Of a DNA stretch of 64,000 bases, positions 19,209 to 64,000 are shown one piece after another. The stretch is from Podarcis cretensis (Eukaryota): NCBI GenBank assembly GCA_951804945.1, contig OX638158.1, positions 31,062,001 to 31,126,000 of the forward strand. Direction: 5' to 3'. The translations under genes were made by a program, and so were the position numbers. The notes beneath the pieces were generated by a model. It saw only the letters and a program-made list of their open reading frames with translations, was not told the DNA's origin and ran no database searches. Positions within the stretch are counted from its first letter, which is position 1, and every line of letters starts with the position of its first letter.

Positions 19209-20511
19209 TTCCTCACGTGGGTGATCTCCAAACAGGGGAAATGGCATGAATCAGCCCTAAGGGCCAAAGAGTCCCTATCCACTCCTATCCTGCTCCTCGA
19301 ATTACAGTACGCTGCCTCCCTAGGAAGTAACTAAGCACGATCCTGCTGGCATCTGAGCTGGATTGATTGAAGGATTTTATTTGAGCTGGATGGGGTGGGG
19401 GCTATTCTCTGTCAAGAGGGTGCTCTTAGCTTCACAGTGCCCATACTGGTTAATCTGCTTCTGCATTCATGCAGCCTGTAATGAATTGTTTAGGCTGTAG
19501 CAAATTGGAGTAGATAATCTGTCTGATGCAGCAATTCCTTCCTTCCTTCACTCACAAAAAAAGGTATCCCTGGTGCACTACCAGACCAGTTGCTACCCCA
19601 CCAGTGAGTGCTCTAAGGCATAAACTGTGTCTTTCAATGCCAGAGGAAGAGAGTTGTGCTCTTCACTATGGCGGATACCTGGCAGCGGGAGTGCAAAAGA
19701 AATCCTGAAAATAAAACTGTGAGCGGAAACTGGGAAATGCTAATGAGGTTGCTTTCCATAGCTTTGTTGCATTGTATTGTTAATTATGAAGCCGTGTAAA
19801 AAGCATAGCTTGGAATTGCCATCCTTCTAGTCTTTTGGAGCTTCCACAACAAGCAAGCCTTTTCTCCCAGCAGGCTCCAACTAACCTTTCACCTCTGTGG
19901 CCTTGACGGAACAGAAGGTGGACTCAACAACAGCATGCTGGGAGGCTGTAGGGAAAATCCTGCTCAAGTTGTGAAAGGGAAAAGGGATCTGCTTCTATGT
20001 GTGATGTGTCTCAGAAGTCACTGCCCGGTTATCTGGAACAAACGTATCACCAAAGGTGCAAAAAGCAAACAGTTTTGAGAAAAAGGAGTTGGGTATTTTG
20101 GGATTTTTGTGGTGTGCCGTAAGAGCATCCTTGTGCTTGGATTGACTGGAGGCAGATCTGTGTTTTTTAATGGTTGGAAAATGAGAATGAATGAATGGGC
20201 TCAAAAAGGGCTTTTGCTGGTATGGTCACAATGGCCAGCATTTTTTATGGTGCCACCAAGACACTGGATTGCTGCAATGACCTGTATCTGTCATAATGGT
20301 GCTGGGGTCAAACCTGTGGTATAATGCAAATTCTGTGGCCATGTATGTAATCATTTTGGGAACCAGACACATAAGGTCTAATTGCTTATATTTTTTAAAA
20401 AAAGCTTTTTCTTTGTTTTTAATGCTGATGGGTTGATGTTTATTTGTTTAATAATTGGTTTGTGTATTTCAACCATGCTTTAGCTATGATTTTTTGGATC
20501 AAACAGTTTAT

Positions 20512-20556
20512 TAAACAAACAAACAAACAAACAAACAAACAAACAAACAAACAAAC
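20512..20556. repeat. (AAAC)n microsatellite
   Basis: Direct reading. Confidence 0.95.
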
Positions 20557-22688
20557 AGTGTAGCCATTTAGTGAACCCATCAGTGTCCATTTGGGATATT
20601 TGCCCATGTGTTTCCTAATCCATCCTCACACTAAAATAACAACAGCTTGTATCCACCACTGCATGAGCAGAGCTTTGCTCTTGCAATGGGACTTCTGTTT
20701 CCTCCACCTCCCCCAATCTGTTCCAGAAAGTCCAACAAACCCCCAGAGCTGATTTTGAGGGCACATGGGGCCTTGGGGGACAGGAGAGGAAGAAGTTCCA
20801 TTGGAAGCATGCAAGTTTGTTGTGCGAGTAGAGCTGTTGCGATGGATGCAACCTTCTGAACAGGACTTTGGGTGAACTATAAGCAGATAAAACAAGCCAT
20901 GTGTCCCTGCCAGAAGACAACACACCTTTGTATCTCACCAAGTCCCACTGAGTTCAGTTTGATATGCTCCCGTGTATGTCTGCACAGTACTTATATCGCT
21001 ATCTTATGCAAGTTTACTCTGAAGTAAGTCCCACTGCATTCAGTGGGAATTACTGTCAGGTAAGTGGCATAGAACTGCAGCTGCAGAGTATCAGTAAAAT
21101 ATTACAGAATACTGGCAACGCATGCTAACATTTTAATTTAAAATGTAATTTATGCAAACAATTTCAGATCTTAATGCATTATCCACAGGGTCGTGAGAAT
21201 GTGCAAAGATTTTTCCTTATAATTGTTTTACTTGGTTATAAGGAACATTTATTTGTACTAATATTTCTCTTAAAATAGATTCTAATAATTTTTAGCTAGC
21301 TTCAGATGTTATTTCAGAGTAAGCATTCTGTAACTCAAACATAAGTTTTTGATCTAGACACTATGATGATCCCCATCATGCCATCCTGAAATATACAAGG
21401 AAATAATAGACTCTGGGTAGCCTCACCTGTGATCCTCCCACTTCCATCAGCCACAATGAGTGTGACCAGTGGTCAGAGACTCCTACTCCTGACATCTATC
21501 TGGACAGTCACAGATTCCTACCCCCCCCCCATAATAGACCGTTCTGTTAATATGCAAACTGCCATTTCTTTTGGGAAGATTTCCTCACTTTTCTTGGGCG
21601 TAAAATATTTGCACATCTCCAACATAATGTACTCATTTCCCTGTGTTCTTGCTGCAGTTCTAAATATGCTGCGCATCTGTAGATGCTTCCCCAGTGCCCG
21701 GGGTAAACTCGCCTTGATGGAAAGAACTTGAGATATAATTTATTAAAACAAACTAGAAGCAGGTATAAAGACTGCCCACAGATTAGAGAGCAAGGTGTTG
21801 GCCCCACTGTGTCCAGGCGTGACTGGAATGCCTGGAAACAGATCTGCACGGAGAACAAGGGTCTGCAGATAAACAGCAGGAGGTGCTGCACGTCTAGACC
21901 AAGCAACATTGATTGAACATGGGCTGTATAGCAACAGCACAACAAAGGCAAGCTCATGGGCAGAAAGATCTGGGAAACGCGGAAGATAATGTTCCGCTTT
22001 CAGAGTGGAGACAGGATTATGAGCAGATAAGCTCTGTGTTTTGGATCTTTGTCACTGATAAATCCTCTACTGTTGGCAATTGGATTTTACTGGAAATTGA
22101 TGTTTTTAAATGCTTTCGCATTGCTACATAAGCCACCCCAGTGTGACACGCTGTTCTGTGCTGCCCTCTTTGTAATAACACAATGAGGGGAGACGCATTC
22201 CATCACACAGCAGACCAGAACGCCATCGCATAAGGCGCCAGGAGGGGGCACAATGCAGTCTTCTGTCAATAATTGCGCTTCCTCCTTGCGCTCTGGCATC
22301 TAAGCTGTTTTTATGTGTTTCAGAAAAAAAGCAAGTGCTCTTCCCTGCTAGGGCTCTTTAAATGAAGGGGGGGGGACACAACAGGGACATCATAAATGTT
22401 TATGCAGTGCCCCCTCTGCAATTGGTGCTCAGACACTTTACATAGAAGTTAATGCATTTAAATCTACATTTTTTAAAAGGAAAAAACCTTTTTCAAACCA
22501 AATAAACACTAGATGGAAGCCAACATTGGATGTCCGCGAAGAAGCGCAGGTGTTTTCAGAATGGGTGTAGGGGTCAGGGTGCTTCCAGCCTGTAACTATT
22601 CTTTTTTTGAGAGGGGAGATTCCATCACATACCAGCCAGTTCATGTTGCATAATTAAAGTTAGTCTGGGACTCCTACTTACTTATCAC

Positions 22689-24468: not shown

Positions 24469-24606
24469 TCATAGAATCTTAGAATTGTAGAGTTGGAAAG
24501 GACCATGAGGGTCATCTAGTCCAACCCCCTACAATGTGGGAATCTTTCACCCATTGTGGGGCTCAAACCCACAACTCTGAGAACAAGAATCTCATGCTCT
24601 GAGCTA
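24469..24606 (-). mobile_element. Short SINE: tRNA-Lys-like head plus CR1 3' tail
   Basis: Reverse complement tagctcagagcatgagattctt...gtgggtttgagccccac joined to ggttggactagatgaccc...attctatga. Confidence 0.75.
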
Positions 24607-25449
24607 TTTGAGCCTTGACAAATCTGCCAGGTCTCCAAGTTAACCCTATACTCCCCATAGACAACAAAGCTATGTATCCCTTTGCCAGTTGCATGAAGAC
24701 ATAACAAGTACATCATATACACAAGCAGTCCAGGACTATAAATTCATTCCTTCAAAAGGGGGAAGGAAATTTTCAGCTGAATTTTAAGTCCCAGGGAAAA
24801 ATAGTATTTGAGAGTGAGATGTTATATGATAATGAAAACCATACAAGTTTTATACTTTTTCTAAATGTACTCTCTGAGTTTCAAGGCATCATGCTGAACG
24901 TTGATGCAGGATTCAAGCTAGAATCCTGAAGGGCCTTTAAAAGACAGAAAATGGTTTGTATGCAGTGTTGTGTTCATGGAATATGTAGGACCAGTCAAGT
25001 GGCTCACACTGTATAATGGATTAGAGAGTGATGTGGTTTGATTAAGTAGCAGGAAAGATGACTTTGGCAACAAGTTTCTAAATGGATTTTAGTGGATGAA
25101 GAGGGAATAGATGGGGTGAGACTCTCATTTTTAAATGACGCAACCAAAGTGGGACGTTGAATATGTGAGCTGAGTGGATTTTGCGTACAGTGTCCAGGCA
25201 GCATGTGGTGAAACAGTTGGGTGATTGCATCACTGCCCGCATAGATCATGGCATGATTCATGTGAATCGTTCCAATACTCAACCAACTATAGGCAACTTT
25301 GCAGGGGCCTGTTACATGTGGGCTGAGTTGCCAACCAAATTTGGCACGGATCCTGTCAACCCACATCCTCAATATGCCAAGTTTTTTTGGGGTATAATTA
25401 GCCGTAGATGGAGGTCTACCATGATGTTTCCTGGCCTCGTCAACAGTGT

Positions 25450-25720: not shown

Positions 25721-25744
25721 TGTGTCACTTCTGTCTCTTTCCAG
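25721..25744 (+). promoter_or_regulatory. U2-type 3' splice site preceding the first coding exon (exon starts 25745, 21 nt of 5'UTR)
   Basis: tgtgtcacttctgtctctttccag|G: pyrimidine tract plus CAG/G, 21 nt upstream of the ATG. Confidence 0.7.
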
Positions 25745-25765
25745 GGATTCTCATTTCATGCCAAC

Positions 25766-26055
25766 ATGGCCGAACATGGCTCCCACCCCTCCTCTACCCG
25801 GCAGTCGGGGAACCCACCCACTCGCAATCCCACTCTGTGCTCTCTGGAACATGTGGATCCAGGAATGAGTGAGCAACCAACTCTGCTGGAGCAACCACCA
25901 CCATCCCCAGACCTGGGTGACGAAGATGATGATGGTGACATGGAGCCTCCGCCGGATCCAGATGTGCCCTATCCTGATTTGGCCCCCGTGGTTTTCTTCT
26001 GCCTGAAACAGACCACCAGCCCTCGCAGTTGGTGCATCAAGATGGTGTGCAATCC
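25766..26055 (+). CDS. CACNA1I: First coding exon of T-type voltage-gated calcium channel alpha-1I (Cav3.3); partial CDS, 96 codons + 2 nt, ends in phase 2
   Basis: Translation [10 protein letters not shown]...[33 protein letters not shown] matches the recalled Cav3.3 N-terminus (human ...[31 protein letters not shown]). Strong Kozak context ccaacATGg. Similarity stops exactly at a U12 donor. WCIKMVCNP favours 1I over 1G/1H. Confidence 0.93.
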
Positions 26056-26064
26056 ATATCCTTT
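26056..26064 (+). promoter_or_regulatory. U12-type (AT-AC) 5' splice site
   Basis: AATCC|ATATCCTTT is a perfect U12 donor consensus at the position where Cav3 genes carry a minor intron (NP/WF). Confidence 0.93.
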
Positions 26065-26089
26065 CAAAACCACAAGCTGCCCTTTCTAG

Positions 26090-26154
26090 CCTTTCTCCTT
26101 CCTCTCTGCCCTCCCTTTGTTCTCCTGCTCTTGCAGAGCACCTGACAGGTAAGA
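26090..26154 (+). other. Candidate 12-nt microexon (26137-26148) or recursive splice site, with U2 acceptor and U2 donor
   Basis: About 45-nt pyrimidine tract, then ttgcag|AGCACCTGACAG|gtaaga. Confidence 0.45.
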
Positions 26155-26534
26155 GACGGCGTTTCTTACATATTTAATGCGTCACTTTGTTCCCTGCTTG
26201 CATTTAAACAGTGCCTTGGCTGCTGCAATATGCAAGCAAAAAGGAGCTGCTTGCGAAATGGGAGACTTCAGAGGGAGCGACTGTCAGTTAGAATCAGAAG
26301 AACAGAGATGAGGGGCAGGGAGAAGAGAGGGGACAAACATTTTAAAACGTATTCCCCCCTTTTCATCTCTTTACTTTTCCTACACTACCAAAGGCGTCAC
26401 GATATGACTCTTTGAAAGCTTCAGAGCATAGGTTATAGCAATGCTAACTTGTTTCTAGGAGAACTTGATGTGGTGGCAGGCATTTATATTGTAGTCTTCT
26501 CTGATATACAGTAAGCTATCTGGTAGCTATAAAC

Positions 26535-62199: not shown

Positions 62200-64000
62200 A
62201 GTAAGACAGGATGGCAAATGTTAACTTTGTAAAGAAATAAGGAACTCAGAACTGGATGTTTTCCCCTGGGATGGTAGGTAGTTGTCATAATTTAGGCTGG
62301 AATGTCCAAAGAGGCCTAAGAGATTTATGCACAGCTGAGCTCCCAGTGGGATTTGGGAACTTTTCTTCTACACGTTTCCTAGCTGGCATCTGAGACCATT
62401 AAGGCAAATTGGTGCACTTGGCCATGTTTTTCAGTAATACAGAATTTCACTTGGAGGTTATGGTGACTGCAACCTTTCTTTTTTCTTATGCAGTAATAAT
62501 GTAAGAATTCAAAACCTGTCAAATGAACCGCTATCAAAGGATGTTAAAGGTTTTTTATTCTCCATAGTTAAAGTTGCTTTAATAAATCTATTAGTTTGTC
62601 TGCAGTCTTCTTATCTATCTTGATTGCCCCTGCTGATCCCTGATAGTCTAGCAGATGCATTTATACTTATCTAGTCTTTCTTCTTCGACACTTAAATTAT
62701 ATTTACTTCCTTTTGTATATCCCGCCCCCACAGACTTTTTCGAAGTGATCAGTTCAAAGTGTGCCCTGTCACATTTTAGCCAGCAACTGGTTTAAAGGTA
62801 ATAGTATGATATCCAGTCCACACATAATGGGGTGTTTTGTGGGGTGGTGGTGGGGGACTAGGTTTTATGAATGACTAGGTTTTATGACTAGGTTTTATGA
62901 ATCCATAGTCCCTTTTGAGATCTTGTGCTGGTTTTTATTCTTTTGCCTCACATGTATTTGTTGAACTATAAACCAATCATTATTTGGAAATGCCCTTAGT
63001 CTGTCTAACTCCCATAACACACTTTGGCTGTGTTCAGATGTGGGGTTTGTTGTGTTAGATTTACTGGTTAGATTTACTAGGCGTCTTTAGCTGTAGCATG
63101 ACTGGTTCAGCTGCACTGCAGGGCACGCCACAAGAATGCTGTAGAATGGAATGTGAGGGGCAAGCAGGTGCCGAATTTTAGTGCCACACAGGTTGCCGCT
63201 GAAATCTGAGAGCCCAAAGTCTACCACTGATATAATCCTAGTGCTTTTGTCCCAATTTCTAATGTTCCTTTTACACTGCAGTGCCTGTTGCATTATGCAA
63301 CTGTGGCCTTGTGATCAATATACCCCCATGTCATGCTCAATTTTAAATGGTGGGAAAGAACTGCATGACAGGATACTGCACCAAATTTTGTATTGTGAAA
63401 TTATAGTACAAAACTCATTTTTTCCTGAGTTAATAAGGTTGCAAACAGATTTTTTAATGGAAACAACATGGAAATGAGCACTAGCCTTTTACGTCATGTG
63501 AACGATCACATAAAATGTAGAGGTTATCAGGCAAGGAAATGTCAGGAAAATGGAATAAAGTGCTGCCTGAATGCATTGTTTCTCTGGACAAATGCAGCAG
63601 CACAGGGAACCTGTAGCCCTCCATATGTTACTGAATCACAGCTCCCATCATTCCTGATCTTGGGCCATGCTGGTTGGGGCTGATGGAAGTTGGCGTCCAA
63701 CAACGTCCACAAGGTTGCAGGATCCCCCTTCCTGTGCTCTCCTGTGACAAATGTTCACTAGCGGGTTCTTTTTTCCTATTCGTTGCCCTGCCACAAAGAG
63801 AGCAGATGGTAACAGCAAGGAAGCGAAGTGCAAATCACTGTCAAACTACAAAGATTAATTACTCTGTTGTCAATGTGTAGTACAGTAATAGCAAACACAT
63901 AATAATAGGAAATTACTAGCTTGCATCATTCATGGAAAAAACAAAACCAGGTTTACTGGAGTCTGGTTCCAGAGAAAGCTGTTATAATGTAATTTGGCCC

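Follow-up and report, generated by a model that had tools for sequence, protein, structure and literature searches.

A U1-type donor-like site in a conserved block behind the U12-type donor of a lizard CACNA1I-like gene, a candidate splice-site look-alike

A genome holds several hundred U12 introns, and the major and minor spliceosomes normally do not mix sites. All genes for the alpha-subunits of voltage-gated calcium and sodium channels retain minor introns (PMC6865273). Minor introns have been described that harbour competing U2 sites, cryptic exons or decoys (PMC8329584, PMC6717393, PMC6097662). In the so-called twintrons of Drosophila prospero and vertebrate SRSF10, a U2-type intron is nested in an AT-AC U12 intron (Janice et al. 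2013). The published list of 18 human twintron genes does not include CACNA1I (PMC3564746). Intron 5 of CENATAC (CCDC84) carries conserved U12 and U2 donors that compete for one shared 3′ site and are both used. Exon 11a of Tmem87b and exons 6a/6b of Mapk8/9 are cryptic or mutually exclusive exons situated in minor introns (Olthof et al. 2019). In MAPK8/9 two U12-type 5′ splice sites compete, the inner exon having a U12 donor of its own (PMC8329584). Retention of introns can be promoted by decoy exons (Parra et al. 2018, PMC6097662), and Rous sarcoma virus has a negative regulator of splicing that binds U1/U11.

The site studied here, near the start of the U12 intron of a CACNA1I-like gene in the window (the whole 64,000-nt stretch of lizard DNA that was analysed), shares features with each of these systems. 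As in the twintrons, a strong U2-type donor (CAG/GTAAGA at 26149, a match at the motif level) is found shortly 3′ of an AT-AC U12 donor. The same intron could thus be contested by both spliceosomes, and splicing at the U2 site would yield another mRNA, here an unproductive one. Unlike the twintrons, only the U12 isoform is seen at this locus and the CACNA1I site is known as a motif. An intron with a U12-type and a U2-type donor that are both conserved, one of the routes leading to a premature stop, also recalls CENATAC, whereas only the U12 route is seen here. As in Tmem87b and Mapk8/9, an exon-like unit with a U2-type acceptor lies in a minor intron right after the exon that bears the U12 donor. 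In contrast to MAPK8/9, the inner unit has a U2-type donor, and skipping of the upstream exon would lose the start codon. A mutually exclusive pair of the MAPK8/9 type was rejected, the inner unit ending in a U2-type GTAAGA with no U12 donor of its own. The resemblance to decoy exons and to the Rous sarcoma virus regulator, that is to splice-site-like elements which bind spliceosome components and modulate their host intron without productive splicing, is an analogy drawn from sequence alone.

Two further kinds of splicing unit come close. The signature of SRRM3/4-dependent neural microexons is a UC-rich tract with UGC next to the AG; real representatives lie between two U2-type introns and can be observed in RNA from neural tissue, and the flanks of real microexons are typically conserved. 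Like them, the unit in the window is 12 nt long and frame-preserving and follows a UC-rich tract with UGC beside the AG; unlike them, it has a U12 donor 81 nt upstream and is not included in the sole spliced contig. Recursive sites lie deep inside U2-type introns. The pyrimidine tract, an AG (26147-8) abutting GTAAG, a first coding intron of more than 38 kb and a neuronal gene are all reminiscent of recursive sites and RS-exons. Unlike these, the site is found only 93 nt into a U12 intron whose donor cannot pair with it, and the tract stops 13 nt before the AG that abuts GTAAGA. The recursive splice site proposed in a preceding sequence-only reading of this DNA was consequently rejected on position and intron type. 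The features of the locus are compiled in Table 1; all coordinates and letters given in that reading were confirmed on the sequence.

Table 1. Features at the 5′ end of the U12 intron in the CACNA1I-like gene (window coordinates)
Feature	Position	Strand	Evidence	Remarks
U2-type acceptor ahead of the ATG exon	25725..25744	+	sequence	pyrimidine-rich (…tctctttccag)
First coding exon, CACNA1I-like T-type calcium channel gene	25745..26055	+	translation, similarity, contigs X1 and X2	
U12-type AT-AC donor ATATCCTTT	26056..26064	+	sequence; contig X2 junction; read-through ORFs	
Conserved non-coding block at intron start	26070..26340	+	tblastn of read-through ORF tails on window	
In-frame TAG when exon is read into intron	26087..26089	+	translation	
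Pyrimidine tract	26090..26134	+		45 nt, 91% C+T, no A; TGC at 26126 and 26132
AG of acceptor-like site	26135..26136	+		further AGs at 26137-8 and 26147-8
Putative microexon, 12 nt AGCACCTGACAG	26137..26148	+	sequence	
U1-type donor-like site CAG/GTAAGAGA	26146..26156	+		8 contiguous consensus matches; GT at 26149-26150

The host exon starts translation at 25766 and ends in phase 2 after …WCIKMVCN-P, its last letters being ...TGCAATCC. Its peptide is 98% identical to an ORF from Podarcis lilfordi and 58-80% identical to the CACNA1I N-termini of gecko, skink, turtle, alligator and birds, which identifies the animal as a lacertid lizard. This N-terminal similarity and the spliced contig described below bear out the earlier identification of a CACNA1I first coding exon with a U12 donor. 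A conserved U2-type acceptor sits 21 nt 5′ of the ATG, and its translated trace, '…(Q/K)(G/E)FS…' before MAE, is common to lizard, turtle, alligator and bird ORFs. As this acceptor precedes the ATG exon, the exon is internal, and a non-coding exon must lie upstream. At the exon end, the 5′ splice site /ATATCCTT is that of a U12-type AT-AC intron, and it was used in RNA exactly at 26055 (contig X2, one contig with a depth of 2.4). Read-through ORFs from fish, amphibians, reptiles, birds and non-human mammals have (N/S)P-YPF/L, corresponding to ATATCCTT, at this place. Because all of them carry it, the U12 intron at this position is ancient in vertebrate T-type channel genes. A scan of the window between the exon and position 64000 revealed no WFE-type ORF of the IS1 exon. 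Thus, the intron is longer than 38 kb; its 3′ end lies beyond the window, which holds the donor side alone.

The RNA data came from two runs of assembled contigs and two of raw bulk RNA. Contig X2, which differs at 2 of 141 nt and thus stems from a close relative, leaves the match to the window at 26055 and continues with 88 letters unlike the intron. The first 30 letters past this point, (CC)T TGG TTT GAG TTT GTC AGT ATG ATG GTG, read P-WFEFVSMMV and match NPWFE…SM.VILLNC, the start of helix IS1 in T-type channels. Hence, the sole junction observed joins 26055 directly to the IS1 exon without the 12 nt (X2, depth 2.4). As contigs drop rare isoforms, a minor isoform could still exist. Contig X1 consists of exon sequence only and begins at 25750, 5 bases into the exon. 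The raw bulk RNA runs (n=2) had 0 reads anywhere on the stretch and hence provided no test. The contigs of 'organism A' differ from the window by single bases at 25861, 25882, 25953 and 25957 (~98.5% identity), which indicates that the RNA-like runs derive from a close relative or another population and not from the assembled individual.

Conservation of the intron start was read from translated ORFs that run from the exon into the intron, so that third codon positions are not readable. The read-through ORF P0045, whose N-terminus we take to resemble human CACNA1I, was left out of all comparisons. In tblastn searches of the window, the tails of duck-like birds matched 26101-26247 and reached 26337 with 48% identity (E 1e-12), the parrot tail matched 26070-26174 (E 4e-6), and the tails of two turtles matched 26130-26174 (E 0.001-0.003). 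To judge from these translated matches, a block of at least ~250 nt is conserved among turtles, birds and lizards. Squamate ORFs end at the TAG equivalent to 26087 ('CPF*/CAF*' in Podarcis, skink and gecko). Because the frame of similarity shifts along the block and the lizard frame has stops, the block is considered non-coding. In broader searches, the exon peptide retrieved mainly short read-through ORFs from the whole library, a profile search aimed at full-length sauropsid CACNA1I had only fish CACNA1G among the matches listed, and a search with the tail of the bird ORF alone found no match besides itself.

Individual splice-like sites were compared across sauropsids by degenerate back-translation of the ORF tails. 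The donor-like CAG/GTAAG is compatible with five of the six non-squamate lineages, namely two turtles, parrot, crane and duck-like birds, the residues at the donor region being TGKR in turtles, AGKE in parrot, GR* in crane and CQVS in duck-like birds. The GT is established in duck-like birds (Q-V) and in crane (R-stop), whereas turtles and parrot are compatible with G/G-AAG, the T of GT being a third codon position that cannot be read there. In alligator (TGQK), position +3 is a C and the donor motif does not fit. The acceptor AG, readable in crane and duck-like birds and not in turtles, parrot or alligator, is GG in crane, and the acceptor codon of the duck-like variants is CGN, TGG or CAR (R, W, Q), with the A replaced in two of the three. 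This R/W/Q variation among closely related birds is the pattern expected from CpG transitions and looks like free drift. The AG/12-nt/GTAAG arrangement holds for its donor half in most lineages, alligator excepted, and breaks down at its acceptor half in crane and two of the three duck-like variants. The duck-like ORFs (P0033, P0292 and P0302, Logan) owe this name to a tail whose beginning resembles that of the Anser ORF P0013. The CAR (Q) form among them would recreate the AG-12 nt-GT arrangement.

We tentatively favour the explanation that the unit is a splice-site look-alike, a pseudo-exon in a conserved intronic block, and that its U1-type site acts on the U12 donor as a competitor or modulator; this is plausible and by no means certain. 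The near-perfect conserved U1-type site would then act in the splicing control of a long minor intron, in one of two ways. As a competing U2-type donor, it would extend the exon by 93 nt, include the TAG at 26087 and yield an unproductive transcript. As a non-productive U1 landing site or decoy, it would modulate recognition or retention of the U12 intron; in lizards, a decoy acceptor may be contributed by the AG and the tract before it. U2 and U12 sites may compete, with the donor-like GTAAG at the centre, and the conserved element is probably a U1-binding competing or decoy site rather than a coding cassette. A bolder version, which we regard as quite unlikely, would make the conserved U1-type donor and the decoy acceptor of lizards and turtles a built-in competitor of the U12 site that ties Cav3.3 output to the minor spliceosome across sauropsids, i.e. 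an undescribed twintron-like or decoy-exon switch. In its rarer form, lizards and turtles would insert four residues (APDS) before helix IS1.

The block might instead be a cis-regulatory element of another type, in which the splice motifs are incidental; it could enhance transcription, belong to the promoter-proximal elements or act from within the intron as an enhancer for the minor spliceosome. We consider this rather unlikely, although several observations agree with it. Conservation extends over at least 250 nt, well beyond the motif, and is strongest in a core at ~26195-26230, 45-80 nt beyond the donor-like site. Bird and lizard cores both read …LAFKQ..GCCN… in one arbitrary frame, and the core, which is not splice-like, may be a separate protein-binding element. 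With its most conserved part beyond the donor motif on the 3′ side, the block may have a different role altogether. Moreover, it is located no more than 300 nt from the ATG exon of a neuronal gene, and use of the U2-type site is absent from the transcript contigs. Arguing against incidental splice motifs, a donor of this strength is rare (2 per 64 kb on the + strand) and has been kept in most of the sauropsid lineages sampled.

It is unlikely that the locus has no function at all, with a chance AG…GTAAG in the pyrimidine-rich start of an intron and a similarity that reflects slow turnover beside a conserved exon. Among the 6,721 GTs of the two strands, the one at 26149 ranks in the top 9, and on the + strand it is one of the two that are so strong, according to a simple log-odds score valid for ranking inside the window only. 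A stretch with at least 80% pyrimidine that is followed by YAG, 3-30 nt and a strong donor is present a single time in the 128 kb of both strands, namely at this site, compared with an expected count of 0.28 per 128 kb in first-order Markov simulations, and a strong donor is expected by chance in a ~280-nt block in about 1% of cases (from the 2 such GTs per 64 kb of + strand); these rarity figures concern a site chosen post hoc among the several hundred U12 introns of a genome, which weakens the case against chance. The arrangement of motifs is statistically unusual. A chance origin is further disfavoured by the bird-lizard similarity (E 1e-12), which extends over ~150-240 nt of intron and is unexpected for neutral sequence at that divergence. 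On the other hand, one of the two sites has been lost in alligator and in some birds, no RNA structure was evident at the site (z = -0.2), and no Rfam family was matched there, all of which would suit a sequence that does nothing. The block is single-copy within the window, where a repeat-element origin was checked.

It is very unlikely in our view that the unit is a genuine neural microexon, or an exon that comes into play on skipping of the ATG exon, included by the major spliceosome in some tissue of at least lizards and turtles. Its appeal lies in a textbook appearance: the unit falls in the 3-27 nt range of SRRM4-type microexons and is in frame, the tract is UC-rich, and UGC is found close to the AG, as the sequence-only reading had pointed out, at distances of 6 nt and 0 nt. 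That the 12 nt preserve the frame and introduce no stop was likewise correct, and since the first base of the next exon is T in contig X2, the insert would read P-A-P-D-S. The interval of 12 nt is free of indels in ungapped ORF alignments with turtles, parrot, duck-like birds and alligator. Between lizard and turtle, all three readable differences in the 12 nt fall on third positions of the would-be frame, which has a chance of ~7% (4 of 56 ways); this pattern is suggestive of a coding frame and no more. The conserved block would fit the conservation typical of microexon flanks, and cryptic exons inside minor introns exist (PMC6717393).

Against inclusion speaks, first of all, the spliced contig X2, which goes without the 12 nt. 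Furthermore, the unit is not flanked by U2-type introns with usable branch points: upstream is the U12 donor 81 nt away, and the unit's own donor is of the U2 type, whereas the intron is a U12 AT-AC intron and has the 3′ end that goes with it. The 81-nt stretch contains no U12 branch site TCCTTAAC, the best match having 3/8 mismatches. The letters 26089-26134 are devoid of A, and the nearest branch candidate, the A at 26088, has a poor context and is only 32 nt from the U12 donor, which makes an in-frame AT-AG event implausible. A hybrid AT-AG intron of 81 nt was therefore rejected, being too short and without a branch site, and because the two spliceosomes do not normally mix sites. Splice sites and peptide are not jointly conserved either. 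The turtle sequence is compatible; the acceptor AG is missing in crane and two of the three duck-like variants, and the peptide encoded by the 12 nt is not kept in birds. Taken together, the in-frame coding microexon that had been suggested found no support, and from the inability of a U12 donor and a U2 acceptor to pair, the lack of a branch site and the short interval we infer that the 12 nt are not an in-frame cassette. A literature search yielded no description of an N-terminal Cav3.3 microexon.

The other routes by which the unit could enter an mRNA are unattractive as well. Splicing from an upstream U2 donor to 26137 would skip the ATG exon and thus remove the start codon, so that entry via skipping of the first coding exon, as previously considered, is unattractive. 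Splicing from the GT at 26149 to a U2 acceptor would lengthen the exon by the 93 nt containing the premature stop. Any use of these sites in the lizard would therefore be unproductive, either because the start codon is lost or because TAG 26087 is included.

If the favoured interpretation as a competing or decoy site is true, a conserved major-spliceosome site 93 nt behind the Cav3.3 U12 donor would provide a testable handle on whether neurons use minor-intron splicing to gate the expression of channels. Should the element prove to be no more than an enhancer or a chance motif, there would be nothing special about the locus, and the lesson would be that microexon-like motifs in U12 introns need junction reads before they are believed.

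Two observations were made elsewhere in the window. On the + strand, no donor-like site is stronger than CAGGTAAGT at 21060, which does not belong to the conserved block. It sits in repeat-like sequence with two similar 'aagtcccactg…' stretches, which follows a (CAAA)n microsatellite at ~20510-20557 (window 20500-21065). Evidently, perfect donor motifs arise in repeats too. On the - strand, 24548-24613 matched the Rfam tRNA model barely over the gathering score (31.3 vs 29 bits) and was not called a tRNA by ARAGORN; this segment is probably a tRNA-derived SINE remnant.
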